This document shows positions 1 to 12,288 of a stretch of 12,288 bases of DNA, one piece after another. The notes beneath the pieces were generated by a model, which saw only the letters and a list, made by a program, of their open reading frames with translations, ran no database searches and was not told the origin of the DNA. Origin of the DNA: Chlorokybus atmophyticus (lineage: Eukaryota; Plantae; Mesostigma and Chlorokybus algae); NCBI GenBank assembly GCA_009103225.1, contig RHPI01001536.1:1-12288 (forward strand), read 5' to 3'. Numbering within the stretch: position 1 is the first letter of the stretch; each line of letters opens with the position of its first letter. A program made the position numbers and the translations under genes.

Positions 1-940
1 TCCTTCTGCTGAGGGACCTGCACAAACATGTGTCAATGCTTGCAAACCAAATGCATGTGCATGCATCCAATCAGTGCTTGTGACAAAATGCATGCAAACT
101 CATCACTAGTGCAATGCAACGTGTGCTACCTGTGGTACAAGGAGCTGTACGTTTTCGGGAGAAGCGTCGTTGTGAGTCACTTCCATGCTTTCTGCCCCAC
201 ATGTAGTCAAGGTAAGCGCGCATAGGTCCATCAACGTTGCGATGCAGGCCAAGGGAGTCGAGATGGACGAGTAAAGGCGGCGTGTCACTTCCAAGTTGGC
301 CTCCAGGATTGCACACAAGCAGCAGACTCCAGTGAGTCCTGTGAACAATCAAAATAATTCCAGTTTGCAAATACAGCAGCAATTCAGCGAGATATTCTTG
401 GCGCTTATTCTCACCGCGTGTCTGGGTTGACAATCACTCCCAGCAAGTCCTTGGCAAACGGATCACTCTCCCACCTGTCTATCCTGTGATTGCTCGTGTG
501 CCAGTCATTTTGTCTATGGCAGCGCACGATCTTGGTGTAGAAATGCGGGTGGAACAGCTTCACCTGAATGCCATCTGCTCTGCCTAAGATTTCCTCTTCC
601 TTGTATCTGCATGTGCATCCCACGTACATATGAGATACACGAATAACACAGACGCAACAAATCACATACCTGCAAAAGAAGTGGAGGATGGTGTCATTGA
701 GCTCTTGTCTGCCATCCAGCAACCTCCTGTCCGTTTCAAGCACTGGCACCGCATCACGTGCACTTGCACTAGGGTAAATGAACAGTGGCTGCGGTGTTGA
801 CGGCTGCGGGTTGCTGACTGGATCGTCCAGCACCATCATATCATCATCGCTGCCCACGAGGTCCACAACTGCCGCAGCCGCCGTGGGTTGCTGATTATCG
901 CCCTCTTCGTCTTCATCGTCAACTTCCATCGTGACTGCCT
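1..940 (-). pseudogene. Ulp1/SENP-family (peptidase C48, SENP6/7-ULP2-like) SUMO protease domain; runs off the window; one frameshift
   Basis: Exons 940-670, 606-415, 338-130 and 17-<1. Motifs: LFIYP...AVPVLETDRRLL...ELNDTILHFF, FHPHFYTKI, RW..DPFAKD, HWSLLLVCNPG (catalytic His 332-334), LVHLDSL (Asp 257-259), VPQQK at the window edge. The catalytic Cys (expected in a DCG motif) lies beyond base 1. Frameshift near 160. Confidence 0.88.
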
Positions 941-1013
941 CTGCAGCCATAAATGGTTCAATTGGGCAAGAACCACAACGCAAATCAACAAGCTCAAGCA
1001 CACAGCAGCTTAC

Positions 1014-1707
1014 CATTGTTAGCCTCATCCCCACTCTCTTCAACGTGTTGAACCCCACTCTGCACAGGTTGTGAAACCCTACCGCAACTGCCCGGCAGAG
1101 AACGACGAGCAAGGCTCTCCCTTGGGAGCTGCGCTGGAGCACCACCTTCTTCGTACGCAGCGCATCGCGAGCACGTAACCTCAACCATGCTACCCACAGC
1201 GTGCCGTCGACAGAGGCTGTTTGGACACGTCGCGCAGACTTGAAAAGCTGCTTCGTTGCAGTATTTCACATGGCACCTGTGTTTTGGTTCAGTACAAGTG
1301 ATGATGGTTCTAGGAGTGAAGTTCCTCACAACAAGATGCCAAGCATTTGCTGCCATGAAGTCCACCTACTCATGCCTTGGGCACTCCCAATATTCATCCT
1401 CCACAGGTGGCATAGAGACACAGTGCGCGTGGTAGCTTTTCCAGCAACCTTCCACATCGCAGCTAGATATGGTGCCCCCATCCTTGCAGACAAAGCAGTA
1501 GTCTTCATGTTCCCGATGTTCCAACGCATGCAGCTCCAGTCTCGGTCTCATCCTGTGAACAAAGGTTCAGTGGCCAGGTCTACAGTCTCACAGTAGGGAT
1601 ATGAGGCATCACAATCGCAAACAGTACCTCTTGTACTCAAAATGCCAGTCGCGGCGTGTGGTCCATGACACCTCGCTCGAGGCGCTATTGGTTTCGCTTT
1701 GGGCACC
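1014..1707 (-). CDS. NSD-type PHD finger plus C5HCH zinc-finger exons (1707-1628, 1552-1370, 1276-1014), in frame with the transposase upstream and Ulp1 downstream
   Basis: Spliced translation HEDYCFVCKDGGTISSCDVEGCWKSYHAHCVSMPPVEDEYWECPRH-E-CHVKYCNEAAFQVCATCPNSLCRRH matches the C4HC3 PHD plus C5HCH spacing of NSD1/2/3 PHD5-C5HCH. Intron 1369-1277 is GTAGGT...CACAG, phase 2. Confidence 0.85.
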
Positions 1708-2806
1708 CTGCACCAAGTACACAAGATGGTTGTATGTGATGCCAAAACCCAGGATATATGAGGACATCCAGATTCTAATGGACAACGTTGTTAACTCTCC
1801 TCTTACCGGAGTGTCCCGGTGCATGCCTCGACGCATGAGACTGCGCCTGTCTTTAACAAGCGCTACTGTTACTTTGTTGTCATGGGGATCAATTCCCTCA
1901 AACCACTGGCCCTTGACCTGCCAGCAAGAAGGGATATTCATCAGCCATTTTCATACTACTATTTCGATTTACTATCATCACACCAAGCACACGCCAAAAT
2001 GATTGCAACACAGCCACTTACCAGGTTGCAATCAAGGTAAGTTTGTTCTGCAAAGCGGGGCTTGTCTTTTCTTAGGATTGCAAATCCTCCACTGTGCTGG
2101 ACGTGGTTGCTCATGTACCACCTAGCTCTGAGCAGCTGGTGCTCCCGACCAGCTATCACCACAACATCAAAAGATTGCACCCTGCCATACCAATGGATCT
2201 TCTTGGTTGTCATCTGAGTCACGCCCAACGGTAAACACGCCACAGTCGATGGTGCGGAGTTTCTTCTCCATTTCCTCTGCTCTGAACTGACCGATGTCCT
2301 TGTAGCGTGCTCTGAAGGATCGCTTGATGTACTTTGGAAAGATTGGACCGCTCAACAGCTCCATCTCGTGCTTTGTAAGCTCCCTAGCAGGTCCACGCCA
2401 GTGATGCAGCTCAGTCATATGCTCCATGTCCTTTGCCACGACATGTCCTTCTTTTTGAGCCCTTTCCCTTGCCATCCCGCGTTTGTTCACCTCCCGACTG
2501 AACTCTCTGTGTAGCAGCGACCCATAAATAAATCATACTGTCTGCGCGTTGGACATCACGTACAAAACAGCAACTCCCAAAGCAACTTACTCTTACAACA
2601 GCCTGTATTCATCATCATTCTCAGCCAACCACCACTCGAGCTCCTGCCTTGTCTTACTATCTTTATCCCCAACCTCAATACGGTGTCTCCGTCCGCAGAG
2701 CATATAGTCGTCATCATCTCGTTGCTTGCCCGATCGCAAACTGATGTCGGAGAAAAGTCGCTTCAAGGTGTCCATGTAAGTGTTCAGCATGAGCTGGATA
2801 GAGTAT

Positions 2807-2876
2807 CTGCAGATGCAACTGGCAAACAATGTGGAAAGTTTGCACGTAATTCTCAGTGGGCTCACACAAAACTTGC
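2807..2876 (-). other. Non-canonical GC-AG intron in the transposase
   Basis: AAAAG|GCAAGT...ATCTGCAG|A. It was the only donor found that gives the phase 2 needed to join ASICK-R-YSIQL. Length 70 nt, similar to neighbouring introns. Confidence 0.7.
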
Positions 2877-4914
2877 CTTTTGCAGATGCTTGCTTCCACA
2901 TGCTGCCTTGCAAATATCATGCGCTTCACCCACTGCATAAAGCGTTCATGTGCCCACTCCCAGTGGTCACGCGTCGGACCAAGCCACATGCACTGCTCTG
3001 GTAGATGGCCAAGGAGGTGCAGCATCATTGTGAGAGAAGTTGGCGGGAAGAACATCCACTTCAGACTGTGCCTCATGCACCAGCACCTGCACTAAGTAAT
3101 AAGCTATGCATGCCATAGGAGCTGGGCATGCAGAGTAAAGTGTTATTACAGCCAACCTTCAATTCTTCGAGGTGTGACTGCTTTACTTCCAATGCAGTCA
3201 GCCGTTGATAGATGTCGCATAGTTTGAAGATGGTTCTCTTCTGATCTTCTCCAATGTCGTGTGCAGAGCGCAGCACGTACTGAAAAACGACCGACCATAA
3301 GTTGTGCTTGTCGTGCGATTTCATCGAGCCTGCATGCTCCATGTCAAAAGTTGTCCATGCATGGAGAATCATTGCTTTAGCGTAAACACAAAACATATAA
3401 CGGCTATCTCACCTAAATGCTTTGTAAAAGACTGCAGTTTCGAGCCGAAAGTGCTTGAAACCCTCACGCCGGAGAGCAATTGCTCAACCAGTCCTACATT
3501 TGTGATTGTCCATGGAGCCTGGGGTTTTACCTTGACTGCGCCTTCCTTTCCATCCTTCATCTTCATCTCTGTCTGCAGCACATAGGTTCAAGTCCTTGGT
3601 TAAATCCAACTGTGGCACATGTCAACGAGGCCGACTACATACGTACCTCTAGCCAGAGTTCAGGCATGCGGCCTTGCTGCTGCAGATGTTCTCGTGATTT
3701 GATGCTGTCGCGCAAGCCAGCTAGGAGATTTGCAAAGTTGGTTGCCAGGTTGGCAAAAATGTGCATAGGGCCAACCACATGACCTTTGACAGATTTTTGT
3801 AACGGTAGCCAATATGGAAGGTCGTGAAAACAGCTCAGTCCAAGGATGCCGGAGGTCTTTGAAGGATGTCTCTTGGAGTGCAGTGGACGCTTGCTGTTGC
3901 GAGATGTCATAGCATACCTGATCACATGGCATCCATTGCTGACATACCTATGTTCTGCAACCGAATGCGCAATCAACTGAGATTGCTCACCTGTACACGC
4001 TCTCTGCAGTCCGCATGGGTGGTGGAGGTCTGTGTTCTGGTTGCGGTCAACGCTCATCAACTCTGTAAGGATGGTCATCCGGTAGGTACCGGCGGTGGCC
4101 TTGATAGATCACCTTTTTGAGAAGTTCCACATGTTCTCCACTGCACTCGCACTTTGAACAGCCAAAGATGGCTCCATGCGCCATCTGCAAGGCAGCTTTT
4201 GCCAGAGCTGCGCAACCAACATGATGTACTTCATCAGCCACAACCATGGTTGCAAGGACAGTCCGATATACAGGTACAGTCAGACACTGATAACAGTAAG
4301 TGCAAACACTGCTGCTGCTTGCGTACCTGGGTAATCATGGATTACAATCTCCAGGATAGATCTGCAACGGAAAACTGCGTCGCGGTGACTGTCATATATG
4401 TCTATACCTACAACAAATGCTAGCAGATTACGTGCCTCAGTCATGCGCATTTGTCAAGCATGACTGCAGTAATGGAATCTGCTTATCCTAGCTGCGTTGA
4501 AACCATACCTTCCCAGAGATCTCCCAACTGGTCAATAATTGGCTTGAGATAAGCCTGTAGATTCTCTGGCTGTTTGGGTCCAGGGATTACAGCAGCTAGA
4601 AATGTAGTGTCTGTCTTGTGCATCTTGGCAATGGGCAGGTTCAACACTGAGATTGTGACCACCCAAAACTCATAGTTCACTGCAACTCAACAAACCCTTT
4701 GCTGCCATTCGTACAGTTACACTGCAACGAGCATACAGGAAGAAAAATGCTCTTTTATACCTTTGTGCGGATCTTTGAACGGGCTCATCCCGTCGATGAA
4801 CATCGCTAGGCGCACATTGCGTGGTTCTTTGGCAAACCGGCTGTAGCGTTGTTCAGTGTCCTTGAACATTGGCGAGTCTGACAGCAGCAAGTACACCAAG
4901 GGCTTACGACCAAC

Positions 4915-5310
4915 TGCCCCAGCCCCACAACACATTCAAACATGCATACAATCGCAAGGCTGGATACTGAGGTCTTACATACCGCCCCAGCACCTCGCCG
5001 ACACACAAACAAACACAGGCAAGGACACCGAGGTCTTACATGCCGCCTCAGCGCCACGCCGACACACAAACAAACACAGGCAAGGACACCGAGGTCTTAC
5101 ATGCCGCCTCAGCGCCACGCCGACACACAAACAAACACAGGCAAGGACACCGAGGTCTTACATGCCGCCTCAGCGCCACGCCGACACACAAACAAACACA
5201 GGCAAGGACACCGAGGTCTTACATGCCACCTCAGCGCCACGCACACAAAAGCACAAGGCACGGACACTGAGGGCTTGCATTGGACTGCCCCAGCCGCTCA
5301 CCAACACAAT
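4915..5310. repeat. 61-bp minisatellite (about 4 near-perfect plus 2 degenerate units) inside a 480-nt transposase intron (5357-4878)
   Basis: Anchor GAGGTCTTACA recurs at 4969, 5030, 5091, 5152 and 5213 (period 61). Unit is approximately CACGCCGACACACAAACAAACACAGGCAAGGACACCGAGGTCTTACATGCCGCCTCAGCGC. There are no unique spacers. Confidence 0.95.
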
Positions 5311-6775
5311 CATGCACACAGTCGTGCCTCATTTACCACTGAACTTGGCAATGTTACCGTGTATAGATCGCATAATCCCATCCTGACTTCGATTTGTGTG
5401 CGCCATCATCTCCGCAGCAACACTAGGTTTTAGGTACAGAGCCCTCAGCGCAGCAGGCACGTCAAAGTAACGCCCAATCTTCCATGCAACTTGTCTACCT
5501 CCTATGTTGCGGTAGCGAGGGGCCTTGCAGACTGCATAAGCAAGTCGTATGCTGATGGGACATGCTAATCAAATCCCATTGTAGTGAACATTTGCAACAA
5601 TTGCTCACCTTTGCAAAGTATCCTGTTGACATGCCAACAGGCATCATATGTGTGGAAGCCCATGTTGAGGCCTTCAAGGCATTTCAATAGCTCGTGCATG
5701 CTGCCTGGCATCTTATTCTCCTTAGGCAAGAGGATGCCACGCAACAACCTGGCACACAGAAACACATCAGTTCTGAACAGGCTGATGTTTCAGCAGTCAG
5801 CAGTGTAATTTGCCCACCAACCTGAGCAGTTTATTCATGAAATTGAAGGGTATTCGATGTAGCTGCGCCAGAACCAATAGCAGCATGGAAATGCCTAGAG
5901 GGGTTGTACGAGAGCCGAAAACAACAGGGTTGCTTGCATTATCCAGCAACGCAGCATTCACCTTGTCAAGTAGCATGGCATCATCAACGCATTTAGCCTC
6001 GTCTGGCTGCGATTCCACATCGGTTTCATAGTCTTGGTCTTCGCCGGCAACATCACCTTGCTCCGCATCACCTTGCTCCGCATCGATTTGCTCAGCAGTG
6101 GAGGTGCAGTGCACTGGCGTCTCAGGCTCTACTTGTCCATTCGTGGATTTGGTTCTGGCACCTTGATGCTCTTGCAATGTAGCATTCTAAATTCCACAAA
6201 ATGCTGGGTGAGATCCGCATTGTTCTCCATAAGCACATTGTCCTTCATGAGCACACAGATTACAACCTGCCAGCTGCAATGAGTCTAATGGCACATGAAC
6301 AATGAGAGGCACAGCATCAGCAATGTCAACATGCCACGCAAGTCAGGTCGTACCTGCTGGTTGCAAGTTGGCTGCAACATTGAAAGGAGATTCAACACTC
6401 GGTTGCAACGGCGTGCCTGTGTCAACATGTTCAGTAGCGTCGTTCCCAACTAGCAATTGTTCGGTGTCATGGAGAGCTTCACCTGGGGCAAGCCAGATCA
6501 ATGATCAGACAGCCTGTTGTATGGCTTCACAGCTGTAGAGAAGTTGCTCTTGTACCTGACGACATGTGTAAGGATGCAGCAGCAACAGCAGCATCAGCTT
6601 CTTCAAGTTCATGGGGTTGTAGTCGATCACGGTATTCAGGAGCAACAGCTTATGGAGTGCCACACCACATGTTTTTGCCAAAGTTTTCATGATATTCAGC
6701 CCTTCTAATGTGGTTGTGTGTGAACACTTTGCTCCCTTTGCAGTCGCGGCAAAAACACCTGCGAAAGTAGCTCAT

Positions 6776-7065
6776 GCTACAAACATCAAAAGAAGTCAGC
6801 CAACATACTGCAAGCAACTTCCAATCAACTTCCATACAGCCAAAGCAAAGACCTGCAGGCACGCTGCCGCCGCTGACACCGCCGCCGTCGCCACCGTCAT
6901 GACTGCCTACCGTAAATTAAGGGTTTAGGACACATCTAATCCCGATTCAAAACAAGCCAGAAAGTCAATCCGGATATGCTCCACAATTTGCGTACATGCT
7001 CCTTTTCTTCTTCCGTCCAGTGCATTAGCTTCTAGGGTTTGTGTGCCAGGTAGCGTGGCGCCAGC
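6776..7065. promoter_or_regulatory. Putative bidirectional promoter / 5' UTR region between the divergent transposase and Tudor-MTase genes
   Basis: Only about 120-290 nt separate the transposase ATG (6775, minus) from candidate plus-strand starts (ATG 6899 in a GCCGTCGCCACCGTC-ATG context; ATG 7066). No defined promoter motif was identified. Confidence 0.35.
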
Positions 7066-7458
7066 ATGCGCGGCGTCAAAGTGTGTAGCTTCTGCAAAGC
7101 ATACTTGGTTAGGAATGGCAACAACAGACGTCTGCAACAGCATGAAGAGAAGTGCAAGCTGTACAGTGAGCAGTATGGCTTCTATGAAGCCTGCTGGCAC
7201 CACAAGGCAAGGGGGGACAATGTGAGGCAATGCAGACTGCTGGCACAATGCATGAGGCCAGATTTCTTTTGAAAGGAGTGCACTTGCCTGCAGTGCTTGC
7301 TTTCCAAGTTTGAGTGGGACGGCGAGCCCATGAATCACCTGCCTTGGGCACGGCCTGGAGCATATCACGATGGGCAGATGTGCAATGTGGTTCGACGTCA
7401 GCTCGTGCGCAACGGTCGCGGCAAGTCCACGGTAATCGAAGACGATGTCAACAACAGG
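7066..7458 (+). CDS. Probable 5' exon of the Tudor-MTase gene: Cys/His-rich putative C2HC zinc-binding region with one in-frame TGA (7270-7272)
   Basis: CSFC-x15-H-x3-C followed by CWHH, C-x5-C and CTCLQC. The same frame stays open from 7273 to 7458 and ends at a strong donor AGG|GTGAGT, in phase 0 with acceptor CCAAAG|GGG at 7531/7532. The true start is uncertain; an in-frame ATG at 7330 follows the stop. Confidence 0.5.
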
Positions 7459-7531
7459 GTGAGTTGAACTGTCCTTGCAAACAGCAAAACAGCGCTTGCA
7501 TGCATGACCAACTTACTCTTGAATGCCAAAG

Positions 7532-7830
7532 GGGAACGCGGTTGTCGACGATGTCGCGACACTGGCTGCTTGGCGGAAGGAGATTGTTGATGAGGGGCAG
7601 TCTTTGGTAGCATGCCGCGTTGTGGTGTACTGGCCAGGAATGAGCTCCTGGTATGCAGGCCACATCATCACTTTTGATGCCAACACAGGTATACTGCAGA
7701 GTATTTACATGCGCACGCTCATGCAAGCACCGGCTCAGGCAAACATGTGGCTCAGGAAAACATACCATCAAGTACGACGATTTCGTTGAGGACCCACGGC
7801 TGCACCACATCTTGATAAAGAACTGGAACA
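7532..7830 (+). CDS. Tudor domain (plant MSH6/PDS5-like) split by intron 7689-7755 and fused in frame to the MTase
   Basis: Spliced translation GQSLVACRVVVYWPGMSSWYAGHIITFDANT-G-KHTIKYDDFVEDPRLHHILIKNW matches the Tudor pattern VxVYWP-x4-WYxGxIxxFDxxTGKHxIxYDD. Donor ACAG|GTATAC and acceptor GGCTCAG|GA are both phase 1. Confidence 0.82.
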
Positions 7831-8693
7831 TGGCAGCTGTGCGTGAGGGTTACGACGTAATGGTTCGTGTTGGTGGTCAAAGCTGTCTGAAACTGCAAGA
7901 CTTGCCTGGTCGAGAGCTCGATCGATGGCCCAAGCCCCCACCCCTTCTGATCACACGCACACCAATAGACTCAAACGGAAGACGTTGCAGGCCGCGCGCA
8001 CTGGATCTCTTTTGCGGCGCTGGTGGTGTAGCCATGGGTCTGTACAGGGCAGGGTTTGATGTTGAGGGCATCGACAACAAGCCACAACCGTCATACCCAT
8101 TCAAGTTCTGCCAGATGGATGCAATGGACGCTGACCCGACAGCATACGCTGCGGTGTGGGCAAGTCCTCCATGTCAAGCTCTAAGTGGGGCCATTCCCAC
8201 TACACAGCGCTCCGCGTACGGCAATCGATGGGAGCACGTCAACCTGATTGACCCCATAAGAGCCAAGTTGCAGTTGAGCGGCAAGCCATGGGTGATAGAG
8301 AATGTCGCAGGCGCATCAGGACACATGACAACTCACCTGAAGCTGTGTGGCACCATGTTCAAGTTGGATGTGTATCGTCATCGCATCTTCGAGACAAACC
8401 CTCCACTGCACTCAGACTTGAAATGCAACCACACTGGTTGTGCACTTGGAGAGCTGGCCACCCACCCGGAGCAGCGCCGGCAGTTGCTACCTGGGGAGAG
8501 GCAAATTTACCCGGTGTACGGCCAAGCATCCTGCCGTGGCACGATTGCAGGGTGGCAGTCTGCCATGCAGGTGGAGTGGATGGATGCGGAATCGGAAGTC
8601 AAGAATGCCATTCCACCAACTTACTCTGAACATGTAGGCAGGCTGTTGCTGGAAGCAATAGGCTTCACTGTTGATTACCCTCCTTTTTACTGA
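7756..8693 (+). CDS. C5-cytosine DNA methyltransferase, compact bacterial/phage type; terminal exon of a Tudor-MTase fusion
   Basis: Motif I LDLFCGAGG (8001-8027), II/III GID...DAMD, IV WASPPCQ (catalytic Cys within 8163-8177), VI VIENV (8292-8306), VIII LCGTMF...YRHRIFE, IX/X AMQVEWM...EVKNAIPPTYSEHVG. Uninterrupted to TGA at 8691-8693. Confidence 0.93.
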
Positions 8694-8780
8694 AAGGTAG
8701 AGGTAGCTCTTGATTGCTGGCCACTTTGTTAGCCTGAACTCAAACCCAACAACAGAATGAGCGACCCAATAAAGTCAGCA

Positions 8781-9978
8781 AGAGGTCTTAATCACGAGGA
8801 TGCCTCTGTTTGCCAGCACGGGAAAGACTGACCTGCTGGGCAGGGTCTCTTCCAGAGCACCTTCATGCCCTGTTGCGCCGTCCGCCCACCCGAGACTAGA
8901 CCTCCTGCGGGTTCACTGCGAACGCAGGGTATGGTCCAACCAAAGCTGACTCGCGAAAGTCATGAACCAGAGGCTCTGAGCATGTGCACAAAGTCTACAG
9001 TACGTGACTTGCGCGAGACGGCTCTGCAGGACCACATCCTGCGTTCAAAGTAAACCCGCAGGAGGTTTTGTGTCGGGTGGGTGGGCGGAGAAGGAGAACT
9101 TCTAGGTTGCTGTGCGCATGCCTTTGGTTGCGTGCAATCTTTGGACACATGCCCGGTTTCAGCGGTTGCCGGGGCCAGTACGAGGGCGTGCCAGTACGAG
9201 GGCGGCATGTCAACAGCAGCAAGAGGTGTTCTCTTGGGTGGGTGGGGGGAGAAGGACTGACAGCCTGAGTTGCCATATCACAAACAGCAACCCAACCCCA
9301 GCGGCAGGTACAACCGTCGTCCATCCAAAAGCCCTGGAGCAGATCGCGACCAACAAGTTCCATGCAGAGGCTGGAGGTGGTTGAGAAGGTGAAATGCAAT
9401 CACAGTTAGTATATGCACGAGAGCGATGCATACCTCATGACTTACTGCGGACTTCTGTTACCACCTCCACTCTACAAGTGCTGTCACACTTACCTGTGCG
9501 CCGTGACTGCATACAAACAGCAGCCAGCAAGGCTCCCAAGGCGGTGCATTCGCAGTGAACCCGCGTGCAGTCGGGATGATCCTAAGCATACAAGGACAGG
9601 CAGATGTGGGTGATTGCGTTTTGCTGCAATCATTCAACACACACAGACAGTCAGCTAAAGCTAACACACTCTATCCTGTACAAAGACCACGAGATTGTCT
9701 TTCCTCTATCCTGTCATGTCAAGCTCCTGTCATGTCACCTGGAAGAACACCTCCACTTCCTGCTGGTTAGCAGCGAAAGCAGGTGGCACAGGCAAGAAGG
9801 GGGCAAGAAAGTGAGCAAGAAGGGGGCTTAATCACAGGGTGATGCCCCTACGCTCTGCATACAAAGACAGAATGAGCAAGCAGAGGGCTTATTCACGAGG
9901 ATGCCTCTGCATTCAGCATGAGCTCAGACCCGAATCGGGAATGAGAAAACAGAGGGCTAAATCTAGAAGATGCTTCTG
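8781..9978 (+). repeat. Dispersed ~28-bp direct repeat AGAGG(T/G)CTTA(A/T)TCACGAGGATGCCTCTG, 4 copies
   Basis: Copies at 8781-8808, 9821-9849 (degenerate), 9882-9909 and 9951-9978. The three better copies have self-complementary ends (AGAGG...CCTCT, or CTTCT with a G-U pair). Confidence 0.7.
8881..9089. repeat. Imperfect inverted repeat (fold-back): arms about 8881-8936 and 9030-9089, about 93-nt spacer
   Basis: The left arm TCCGCCCACC--CGAGACTAGACCTCCTGCGGGTTCACTGCGAACGCAGGGTATGGTC aligns to the reverse complement of the right arm at roughly 80% identity by eye. Confidence 0.85.
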
Positions 9979-10072
9979 TGTTCAGCTTGAATTAATATAT
10001 ACACTTACACATGAGGTTGGCCCTGCAAAGCTGGTAGTCGTGAAGTGAACAACCTCAAGGTTGCTGTCACAG

Positions 10073-10905
10073 CTACCTCTGCTGCTGCGGCTGCTGCTGC
10101 TGCTGTGTTTCCTTCTGCTCCCGCCGCTGCTTTCGCTGCTCCTTTCCCTGCTGAGCCATTCGCTTTATCTGTTGGCGCTCCTCCTCCTTCTGCCGCTTCA
10201 GCTGCTTACGCAGCTGCTCCTGCTGCTCAAGGGTCTCCTGTGCAGCTATCATCTCCTGCTCACGCTGATATGCAGCTTGATGTGCCAGCTTCTTGCCCTC
10301 CCGATGACTTACGATTTGTTCCAGTCGTTCCAATTTCTGCAACCTGCTTGGCTTTGCCGAACTCAAACTTTGAACGATCTAGGAGGTGTGCTTGCTGTTT
10401 AACAAGCAAGGTCCGCTCATAAGTCTTAGCAGCCGACACAAGCAAATCGAACTGATCAGCATTCCAATCTTGGTTGCAAGGACCCTTGGGCACGCCAATG
10501 CGCACTACTTTCCTGAGTCCCTGGAGAAACAGTTGTAGTTTAAGGGCCTTAGGCACCAGCTCAACGCAGGTGTTTGCCACCCCGCACAATTGTGCAAACT
10601 GCGCGTGATATTCGTCCACGGTGCGCTCCCCCTGTTGCACACGATGCAGCTTCTGGAAAGCACCGGAAGGCGTGTTGTCCCTTTGCAAAGCAGCTCGCTG
10701 TTGGCGGCGTGACGGGCGGCGTCTGCGTTTCTTGGGGTCACTGGTGTCACTGGTTGCTGCGGTGCTGATGTCAATTGACATATCACTGATAGCATCAGCC
10801 TCCTCCTCAACAGCGGCATCAACCTGCATAGCGCCAGCCTCCTGCTGGCTCCTGGCCTCAGCCTCCTGCCTTTGCTGGTCTTTAGCCTCGTTGGCCTTAG
10901 CCTCC
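10073..10905 (-). pseudogene. Second copy of the gag-like ORF (10905-10260) plus an overlapping +1-frame Gln/Glu/Lys coiled-coil ORF (about 10380-10073)
   Basis: Same gag translation as 11428-12073. Coding-like content switches frame near 10380-10365 into SSAKPSRLQKLERLEQ...QQQQPQQQR*. Confidence 0.55.
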
Positions 10906-12073
10906 NNNNNNNNNNNNNNNNNNNNNNNNNNNNNNNNNNNNNNNNNNNNNNNNNNNNNNNNNNNNNNNNNNNNNNNNNNNNNNNNNNNNNNNNNNNNNNN
11001 NNNNNNNNNNNNNNNNNNNNNNNNNNNNNNNNNNNNNNNNNNNNNNNNNNNNNNNNNNNNNNNNNNNNNNNNNNNNNNNNNNNNNNNNNNNNNNNNNNNN
11101 NNNNNNNNNNNNNNNNNNNNNNNNNNNNNNNNNNNNNNNNNNNNNNNNNNNNNNNNNNNNNNNNNNNNNNNNNNNNNNNNNNNNNNNNNNNNNNNNNNNN
11201 NNNNNNNNNNNNNNNNNNNNNNNNNNNNNNNNNNNNNNNNNNNNNNNNNNNNNNNNNNNNNNNNNNNNNNNNNNNNNNNNNNNNNNNNNNNNNNNNNNNN
11301 NNNNNNNNNNNNNNNNNNNNNNNNNNNNNNNNNNNNNNNNNNNNNNNNNNNNNNNNNNNNCCGCTTCAGCTGCTTACGCAGCTGCTCCTGCTGCTCAAGG
11401 GTCTCCTGTGCAGCTATCATCTCCTGCTCACGCTGATATGCAGCTTGATGTGCCAGCTTCTTGCCCTCCCGATGACTTACGATTTGTTCCAGTCGTTCCA
11501 ATTTCTGCAACCTGCTTGGCTTTGCCGAACTCAAACTTTGAACGATCTAGGAGGTGTGCTTGCTGTTTAACAAGCAAGGTCCGCTCATAAGTCTTAGCAG
11601 CCGACACAAGCAAATCGAACTGATCAGCATTCCAATCTTGGTTGCAAGGACCCTTGGGCACGCCAATGCGCACTACTTTCCTGAGTCCCTGGAGAAACAG
11701 TTGTAGTTTAAGGGCCTTAGGCACCAGCTCAACGCAGGTGTTTGCCACCCCGCACAATTGTGCAAACTGCGCATGATATTCGTCCACGGTGCGCTCCCCC
11801 TGTTGCACACGATGCAGCTTCTGGAAAGCACCGGAAGGCGTGTTGTCCCTTTGCAAAGCAGCTCGCTGTTGGCGGCGTGACGGGCGGCGTCTGCGTTTCT
11901 TGGGGTCACTGGTGTCACTGGTTGCTGCGGTGCTGATGTCAATTGACATATCAGTGATAGCATCAGCCTCCTCCTCAACAGCGGCATCAACCTGCATAGC
12001 GCCAGCCTCCTGCTGGCTCCTGGCCTCAGCCTCCTGCCTTTGCTGGTCTTTAGTCTCGTTGGCCTTAGCCTCC
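10193..12073. repeat. Near-identical 713-bp duplication (10193-10905 vs 11361-12073, offset 1168) flanking the assembly gap
   Basis: Only three differences were seen: 10605 g / 11773 a, 10786 c / 11954 g, 10886 c / 12054 t. Confidence 0.9.
10906..11360. other. Assembly gap (455 N)
   Basis: Run of n characters. Confidence 1.
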
Positions 12074-12288
12074 GCCTCCTGCCTCTGCTTGGCCTCGGCC
12101 TCCTCCTGCTTGGCCTTAGCATTGGCCTCATCCTGCTTGGCCTTGGCCTCCTCCTGCTGCTGCTTGGCCTCGGCCTCTAGCCTCTGCTTGGCCTTGGCAT
12201 TGGCCTCATCCAGCTTGGCCTTGGCCTCCGCCTCCTGCCGCTGCTTGGCCTGCTGCTTGGCCTCCTGCTTGGCCTGCTTGGCCTCGGC
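11428..12288 (-). CDS. Gag-like protein (Retrotrans_gag-type capsid segment) with N-terminal EAK/Q coiled-coil repeats; 5' partial
   Basis: The frame is open from the window end to TGA at 11428. FQKLHRVQQGERTVDEYHAQFAQLC...LQLFLQGLRKVVR...LVSAAKTYE resembles the retrotransposon gag major-homology region. A basic KKRRRRPSRR stretch (NLS-like) precedes it. Confidence 0.6.
   Translation of the reverse strand, partial: AEAKQAKQEAKQQAKQRQEAEAKAKLDEANAKAKQRLEAEAKQQQEEAKAKQDEANAKAKQEEAEAKQRQEAEAKANETKDQQRQEAEARSQQEAGAMQVDAAVEEEADAITDMSIDISTAATSDTSDPKKRRRRPSRRQQRAALQRDNTPSGAFQKLHRVQQGERTVDEYHAQFAQLCGVANTCVELVPKALKLQLFLQGLRKVVRIGVPKGPCNQDWNADQFDLLVSAAKTYERTLLVKQQAHLLDRSKFEFGKAKQVAEIGTTGTNRKSSGGQEAGTSSCISA
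12074..12288 (-). repeat. Coding low-complexity repeat (GAGGCCAAG / CAGGAG units; about 26-aa EAKAKQDEANAKAKQ..EAEAKQ.QE period)
   Basis: Direct translation: AEAKQAKQEAKQQAKQRQEAEAKAKLDEANAKAKQRLEAEAKQQQEEAKAKQDEANAKAKQEEAEAKQRQEA. Confidence 0.85.

Follow-up and report, generated by a model that had tools for sequence, protein, structure and literature searches.

Can a cut-and-paste DNA transposon carry its own cytosine methyltransferase, and one that is fused to a histone reader? This question is raised by positions 1–8693 of a 12,288-nt stretch of DNA from Chlorokybus atmophyticus (contig RHPI01001536.1 of assembly GCA_009103225.1, positions 1–12,288; the whole analyzed stretch is called the window here), where a minus-strand gene for a CACTA/EnSpm-type transposase and a plus-strand gene for a predicted Tudor-C5 DNA methyltransferase diverge from a short common spacer. 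We favor the view, with a probability of roughly 0.6, that positions 1–8693 are the right-hand part of an old and damaged composite CACTA/EnSpm element whose accessory gene is the divergent Tudor-methyltransferase. The window sequence is eukaryotic, with intron-split genes, ∼50% G+C, and short GT-AG introns of 48–100 nt. Gene models for both strands were built from the sequence alone by manual splicing, with every junction checked by script; an automatic model, produced with an in-house dynamic-programming program trained on 1,148 codons, was rejected as it missed known exons. For comparison we used DNA contigs from public runs of two studies; both runs have the same variants and so represent one lineage.

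The plus-strand gene encodes a predicted C5 DNA methyltransferase

The plus-strand gene begins with an ATG at 7066 and comprises three exons (7066–7458, 7532–7688, and 7756–8693) and two introns (7459–7531 and 7689–7755), giving 496 codon positions. Exon 1 (7066–7458) encodes a Cys/His-rich region without a Pfam match; the N-terminal exons of the transposase gene likewise yielded nothing in Pfam. There follow an RDM15/PDS5-like Tudor domain (7532–7850), which is split by a 67-nt intron (its first part is the exon 7532–7688 and it resumes at 7756), and a small, complete C5 DNA methyltransferase core (7980–8693). The stop codon occupies 8691–8693 and an AATAAA is present at 8768.

The core contains the C5 motifs in order, FCGAGG (I), SPPCQ (IV), ENV (VI), RHRIFE (VIII), and AIPP (X), at columns that are invariant among 40 homologues. 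Pfam analysis of this open reading frame (ORF) matched the N-terminal third alone (E = 2.4e-4). A search of 5.8 billion clusters matched the ORF to thousands of PF00145 proteins (best E = 1.3e-69), and 4,083 of 1.84 billion representative proteins were matched at E ≤ 0.001. The structural model has a mean predicted local distance difference test (pLDDT) score of 90.9, and a Foldseek comparison returned M.HaeIII as the top match (1dct, E = 1.5e-8), followed by DNMT3A/B and DNMT1; the modeled structure is consistent with the class I S-adenosylmethionine methyltransferase fold of DNA C5 enzymes. The plus-strand ORF ending at 8693 is a predicted C5 cytosine DNA methyltransferase.

The Tudor domain as a predicted histone reader

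The Pfam call for the Tudor domain was weak (E = 0.06). The first Tudor exon aligned to PDB entry 7DE9 with an E value of 0.01, covering half of the domain only, and the second half of the domain alone gave no PDB sequence match. Entry 7DE9 is the Tudor domain of Arabidopsis RDM15 (PDS5C) bound to histone H3 monomethylated at lysine 4 (H3K4me1; PMC8184781). Using the residue numbering of that paper, cage residues Trp616 and Tyr623 of RDM15 are matched by Trp and Tyr in the 7DE9 alignment, and motif comparison pairs Tyr641 and Asp643 with the Tyr and the second Asp of KYDD. The aromatic cage of three (Trp616, Tyr623, and Tyr641) was found together with similarity to the RDM15/PDS5-type Tudor. 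An earlier, sequence-only reading of this DNA had proposed a Tudor-C5-methyltransferase gene; the PF00145 matches, the motifs, and the fold agree with that proposal, as does the Tudor domain, weak in Pfam and backed by the 7DE9 match.

The residues that discriminate methylation states are preserved in part. In RDM15, Asp643 and Asp645 coordinate the monomethylammonium group and give specificity for H3K4me1 (PMC8184781). By motif comparison only, the window sequence YDDFVED keeps Asp643 and has Val at position 645, and the Asp pair is thus incomplete. Methyl-lysine binding by the window Tudor domain is plausible from its cage, whereas strict monomethyl specificity is doubtful because the counterpart of Asp645 is Val. 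The two proteins are alike in Tudor subtype by sequence and in the shared residues Trp616, Tyr623, Tyr641, and Asp643. In plants, RDM15 connects H3K4me1 to DNA methylation and recruits the machinery of RNA-directed DNA methylation (PMC8184781); unlike the window protein, it is a recruiter without a methyltransferase fusion, and it has Asp645 where the window has Val.

The modeled minus-strand gene joins a CACTA transposase to PHD-C5HCH and Ulp1 domains

From 6900 down to 1 on the minus strand, ∼20 exons thread in phase from the transposase through the PHD and C5HCH domains to Ulp1; their splice sites are GT-AG, apart from one GC-AG intron (after 2877). Candidate start codons lie at 6900–6898 and 6775–6773. 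The 5′ part includes a Cys-rich exon (6775–6556) and further exons at 6131–5822 (approximate at its start), 5748–5609, and 5531–5358. The transposase core (4913–2597), for which phases were checked, starts with exons T1 (4913–4761), T2 (4679–4509), T3 (4407–4327), and T4 (4207–3991) and continues with exons at ∼3896–3647, 3572–3413, 3329–3157, 3091–2877 (DUF4218, followed by the GC-AG intron), and 2806–2597. Four exons within 4935–4050 matched Transposase_21 (PF02992, best E = 1.1e-10), and DUF4218 (PF13960) was matched at 3091–2717 (E = 2e-9). A DDE transposase of the Transposase_21 (tnp2) type with a DUF4218 region is consistent with membership in CACTA/EnSpm.

Linker exons (2506–2022, 1917–1807, and 1707–1628) lead from the C-terminal region of the transposase to an NSD-type PHD finger exon (1552–1370), identified by a PHD_NSD match at 1566–1369 (E = 7e-7, 29.8 bits versus a curated cut-off of 23.9) and a splice check. 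The next exon (1309–1014) carries C5HCH, whose match at 1365–997 (E = 1.5e-5) is marginal, its 25.5 bits lying just below the cut-off of 26.3. The 60-nt GT-AG intron between these exons takes out a stop codon that separates the two Pfam matches; once it is removed, PHD_NSD and C5HCH are adjacent and in phase, consistent with an NSD-type PHD5-C5HCH module. Exons for Ulp1/SENP (Peptidase_C48) follow at 940–670, 606–415, 338–130, and 17–1. The Peptidase_C48 match (433–74, E = 0.004, 17.5 bits versus a cut-off of 20.7) is partial, being cut by the window start. Of the Ulp1 triad, the His motif (HWSLL, ∼334–314) and the Asp motif (LVHLDS, ∼268–248) were seen, the Gln motif (VPQQ) lies in the last exon in a +1 shifted frame, and the catalytic Cys would lie beyond the window start. 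Pfam detected no OTU domain in the window.

The Pfam matches and the phase-consistent splicing support one long transposase-PHD-C5HCH-Ulp1 product, in agreement with the sequence-only reading, which had described a CACTA transposase spliced to PHD-C5HCH and Ulp1. Maize En/Spm yields two products by alternative splicing, and by analogy the minus-strand gene may also be spliced into two products. The intron between exons 5531–5358 and 4913–4761 holds a 61-nt tandem repeat (4962–5242, 4.6 copies, 96% match), and the public contigs break at this repeat.

Arrangement of the two genes and boundaries of the element

The divergent start codons are separated by 165 nt (6900 to 7066), or by 290 nt with a transposase start at 6775, which matches the head-to-head layout within 300 nt that had been proposed for the two genes. 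The spacer (6901–7065) is a candidate bidirectional promoter. A telobox-like AGGGTTT motif (AAACCCT when read on the opposite strand) occurs twice within it, at 6920 and 7034. We regard the short spacer as the strongest argument within the window for co-residence of the two genes, since it would otherwise have to accommodate a transposon terminus, subterminal repeats, and a separate promoter. The same colinear arrangement occurs in contigs of both studies, and one contig (5213–7161) extends from the transposase 5′ exons across the spacer into the beginning of the methyltransferase gene. As to whether the methyltransferase lies within the boundaries of a mobile element, the window shows adjacency and a common spacer, and no boundaries were found in it.

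Several observations weigh against a single composite element. Its left end would lie beyond position 1, so that the window holds the right-hand part only, and no convincing CACT(A/G) terminus and no target-site duplication (TSD) were detected within the window, the right side included. The word depth of the main contigs is flat and about single-copy (∼18–26 in one run and 26–34 in the other), which shows that this exact unit does not form a recent family of many copies. In paralogous contigs, similarity of at least 90% stops at loose ends, at 7544 and 8693. Also to be set against our preferred reading as a whole are the Val at Tudor position 645 and the tree support reported below for the methyltransferase, which stays under its threshold. 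Of the proposal that one CACTA transposon contains both genes, the gene content and head-to-head layout are supported, and no terminus or TSD was seen in the window.

The paralogous contigs merit closer description. Contigs break repeatedly within 7161–8656, and extra contigs that are 90–95% alike pile up there, from which it follows that paralogous copies of the methyltransferase exist. Divergence sets in immediately 3′ of the stop codon (8693) in one paralogous contig and upstream of 7544 in another; the loose ends of both retain a resemblance to the local flank, including the first letters 3′ of the stop codon, which suggests that the paralogues are old duplicates with a conserved coding part. 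In contigs of both public runs a joint runs from 7576 back to 7461 with TTGTC between, implying a local 121-nt duplication that covers the intron and the first part of the Tudor exon and belongs either to that strain or to a paralogous copy.

These data bear on the alternative that the two genes are independent neighbors, the Tudor-methyltransferase being a small mobile or duplicating cassette of its own, or the cargo of another element, beside which the CACTA element landed. No shared termini were found in the window, the paralogous contigs are at least 90% alike only within ∼7544–8693, and the gag-like retroelement gene directly to the right makes the neighborhood a pile-up of transposable elements, all of which speaks for this alternative. 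It has more difficulty with start codons merely 165–290 nt apart and with a paralogue whose first letters after the stop resemble the 3′ flank, a pattern that fits an old duplication of a larger unit followed by selection on the coding part. We consider it unlikely, while granting it some weight, and retain the composite CACTA/EnSpm element as the better account.

To the right of the methyltransferase gene lies a non-coding stretch of ∼1.3 kb (8780–9980) that is rich in short direct and inverted repeats, including a 28-nt motif at 8781, 9882, and 9951 and a 79-nt imperfect palindrome (8859–8937 / 9029–9107). These could be subterminal repeats or part of another element. A small CACTG element at 8914–9557 was considered as a transposon end and rejected: its inverted repeat extends 7 nt past CACTG, and the triplets on either side of it are reverse complements of each other instead of direct repeats. 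A CACTG/CAGTG inverted pair occurs just once, at 8907–8926 and 9545–9564 (20 nt), and has no direct 3-bp flanks. Pfam analysis of the ORFs in 8700–10000 detected nothing beyond a weak zf-CCHC zinc knuckle remnant inside the repeat-rich stretch (8963–9277, minus strand, E = 0.023), possibly a degraded extension of the gag-like element. The gag-like gene itself (10076–12288, minus strand) encodes a coiled-coil, Lys/Glu/Ala/Gln-rich protein with a Retrotrans_gag match (E = 9e-5). It encloses an N gap at 10906–11360, around which there is a 1,168-nt tandem duplication (10193–10492 and 11361–11660 are 100% identical) that may be an assembly artefact.

Decay of the transposase gene and possible constraint on the methyltransferase

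The transposase gene carries four lesions, namely two in-frame stops and two probable frameshifts. An in-frame TAA interrupts the Cys-rich 5′ exon at 6652–6650, where the public contigs read GAA. An in-frame TGA at 4049–4047 in exon T4 comes after the HPYR motif, where the Transposase_21 match ends (profile position 184 of 213), in a segment that we regard as conserved coding sequence in CACTA transposases. Near 2214–2184 the reading frame changes, probably through a 1-nt frameshift, and a second change near 196–166, also a probable frameshift, splits the His and Asp motifs of Ulp1 from the VPQQ motif. The transposase gene of this copy can no longer make its full protein. In the methyltransferase gene, an in-frame TGA lies at 7270–7272 within the Cys-rich region of exon 1, where the public contigs read TGG; a 72-nt GT-AG interval (7222–7293) could remove it as an intron, in which case the gene would have four exons and three GT-AG introns. 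If the stop is not removed by splicing, only the part of the methyltransferase gene beyond it is open; from 7532 to 8693 the Tudor-methyltransferase frame is uninterrupted with all motifs intact. Two of the three in-frame stops (6652–6650 and 7270–7272) are thus sense codons in public contigs of the same locus, which also have 27 extra nt at 5633. The simplest reading of these sequence differences is that the window allele is more decayed than the allele in the public data sets. The sequence-only reading had suggested that the element may steer its own epigenetic state, through self-methylation, mimicry of host marks, deSUMOylation, or targeted insertion; for this damaged copy as it stands, such a role cannot apply.

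Comparison of the window with orthologous contigs revealed no differences in 1,080 nt (7577–8656) of Tudor-methyltransferase coding sequence. The flanks differed at 15 positions in 1,949 nt on the left and 10 in 1,398 nt on the right, together 25 in 3,347 nt (∼0.75%); at that rate the coding part should show ∼8 differences (Poisson P ∼3e-4 for none). This result suggests that the Tudor-methyltransferase part is subject to constraint or gene conversion even as the transposase gene decays.

Signs suggestive of methylation are also present in the window. The observed/expected CpG ratio is 0.54–0.66 in all parts, and 15 of the 40 listed strain differences (4500–10400 versus the public contigs) are CpG transitions; in 12 of these 15 the contigs have CpG and the window has TpG or CpA. 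As expected for long-term cytosine methylation, CpG depletion and CpG transitions appear together; they do not indicate the responsible enzyme.

Origin of the methyltransferase

Most relatives of the window enzyme are 200–240-aa orphan enzymes, one of which (P0125) is encoded on a phage-like contig along with DNA polymerase A and other methylases. The closest relatives (P0001–P0004, P0006, P0123, and P0124; 41–52% identity) are from virus-like contigs and have a methyl-CpG-binding (MBD) insert in the variable, target-recognition region. One of them (P0004) is encoded on a 29-kb contig whose genes, topoisomerase II and ribonucleotide reductase among them, are densely packed in a virus-like array. 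The window enzyme shares with this MBD-insert clade extra motifs, namely a C-terminal VDYPP and a CNH..C.LG segment, and groups with it in a tree; it differs in missing the insert and in having the N-terminal Cys-rich region and Tudor domain, the clade being without Tudor. A quick maximum-likelihood tree placed the window enzyme inside the clade with Shimodaira-Hasegawa-like approximate likelihood ratio test (SH-aLRT) values of 89–93, below the threshold of 95. Scans of viral and metagenome contigs with the methyltransferase gave no confirmed relative. Overall, the affiliation of the window enzyme is with small orphan methyltransferases from phages and from giant-virus-like contigs.

Two variants among the relatives deserve mention. 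In a 414-aa protein (P0182), a relative of the small methyltransferase is joined with a DDE transposase domain of the IS1595 type (PF12762, E = 1.6e-5); judged from its domains, this protein is a further, distinct example of such an enzyme combined with a transposase. Close relatives also occur as tandem double-methyltransferase proteins of 438–453 aa (P0005, P0121, and P0122).

Reader-fused DNA methyltransferases are typical of host silencing pathways, as in the PWWP and ADD domains of DNMT3 and the chromodomain of plant CMT. By this precedent the Tudor-methyltransferase could belong to a host or domesticated family that methylates transposons and is found near transposases only through its repeat-rich location, a view that would also fit a coding sequence free of differences over 1,080 nt while the neighboring transposase gene gathers stops and frameshifts. 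Against this view, no match covered the first 60 query residues (the Tudor/linker part of the fusion) in 1.84 billion representatives or 5.8 billion clusters, among which the source genome's own proteins were not included; with no Tudor-bearing orthologue in either search, this is not a conserved streptophyte gene. The in-frame stop in this copy and the phage/giant-virus-type orphan enzymes that are its nearest relatives also speak against a host family, which we judge to be improbable. Least likely by far is an endogenised giant-virus remnant unrelated to the transposon, which would suit the virus-like contig of the closest long-contig relative with its topoisomerase II and ribonucleotide reductase genes, but not the GT-AG introns and plant-type Tudor domain of the window gene, nor a 12-kb neighborhood of transposase and gag-like genes with no other viral gene.

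Discussion

On our preferred reading of an old composite CACTA/EnSpm element, the main gene would once have coded for a single ∼1,500-aa protein with a Cys-rich N-terminus, a Transposase_21 DDE core, DUF4218, an NSD-type PHD-C5HCH module, and Ulp1. The second gene, divergent from the 165–290-nt spacer, would have supplied a Cys-rich region, an RDM15-like Tudor domain, and a C5 methyltransferase of phage/giant-virus ancestry, the virus-type enzyme having gained spliceosomal introns and a plant-type reader. The Tudor cage might dock the enzyme on nucleosomes with a methylated H3 lysine, for which our best guess is H3K4 in a low methylation state, and the docked methyltransferase would then add 5-methylcytosine (5mC) nearby, amounting to reader-guided de novo methylation. 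In this way the element family would bring its own methylation, most plausibly to damp or disguise its transcribed copies, while the PHD-C5HCH-Ulp1 tail would deliver a SUMO protease to transposase-bound chromatin. From these sequence features we infer that the Tudor-methyltransferase could be a histone-mark-guided de novo cytosine methylase serving to damp or disguise copies of the element.

Mobile elements with chromatin enzymes are already known. Retrotransposons of Symbiodinium (SymbioLINE-Dnmt and SymbioDIRS-Dnmt3) and of Klebsormidium carry DNMTs with intact catalytic motifs (PMC5890265). They resemble the window in that a mobile element has its own C5 methyltransferase, one host being a streptophyte alga, and differ in being retrotransposons with mainly eukaryotic Dnmt3-type enzymes and no mention of Tudor (PMC5890265), whereas the window has a small phage/giant-virus-type enzyme with its own spliced gene next to that of a DNA transposase. 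Among fungal DNA transposons, KDZ, Plavaka, and others encode TET/JBP dioxygenases, and the same work cites SET genes in Harbinger and MuDR elements and anti-silencing by VANDAL (PMC12730594). The fungal elements, CACTA-superfamily relatives included, also place an enzyme of cytosine methylation beside a transposase, with an accessory type common to several lineages; unlike the predicted window enzyme, theirs oxidizes 5mC, acting as an eraser or modifier rather than a writer, in fungi and with no histone-reader fusion described (PMC12730594). Giant Plavaka elements of red algae, 17–19 kb in length with accessory genes PAG1–3, are similar as very large CACTA-superfamily elements with chromatin- or DNA-modifying accessory genes (bioRxiv 10.1101/2025.02.11.637652). 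Their PAG2 is unlike the window gene, being a putative N6-adenine methylase with SET rather than a C5 enzyme, and no Tudor, PHD-C5HCH, or Ulp1 is reported (bioRxiv 10.1101/2025.02.11.637652).

The Ulp1 part has its own precedent in plants. Ulp1 domains have been captured by plant transposons, including the KAONASHI Mutator-like elements (MULEs) and some CACTA elements, so that a DNA transposon coding for a Ulp1/SENP domain is familiar; the window differs in that Ulp1 is apparently spliced in frame to the transposase via an NSD-type PHD-C5HCH module. Full-text searches of the literature did not find the combination of a DNA methyltransferase, a Tudor domain, and a CACTA or other DNA transposon. 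The sequence-only reading had known of no such combination, and we likewise found no reader-fused C5 methyltransferase beside a DNA transposase in the papers searched. What appears to be new, within those papers, is the pairing of a cut-and-paste transposon with a histone-reader-fused, virus-derived C5 methyltransferase.

A broader possibility, which we put forward as speculative and would ourselves bet against, is that the reader-writer cassette, with its Cys-rich region, a Tudor domain that would read methylated H3K4, and a giant-virus-derived C5 methyltransferase, is under purifying selection and is common to CACTA, Plavaka, and Academ giant transposons in this early-diverging streptophyte alga. 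Transposons rather than the host would then supply major de novo methylation and shape the methylome, with the PHD-C5HCH-Ulp1 tail as a second chromatin-directed activity.

This copy is damaged and partial, which lowers the value of the window for such questions. Should the paired gene be genuine cargo, an enzyme from a giant virus or phage would have turned into a spliced nuclear gene, gained a plant-type histone reader, and later been taken up by transposons. The pairing would also give a simple setting in which to ask why a selfish element writes the very mark that usually silences it.

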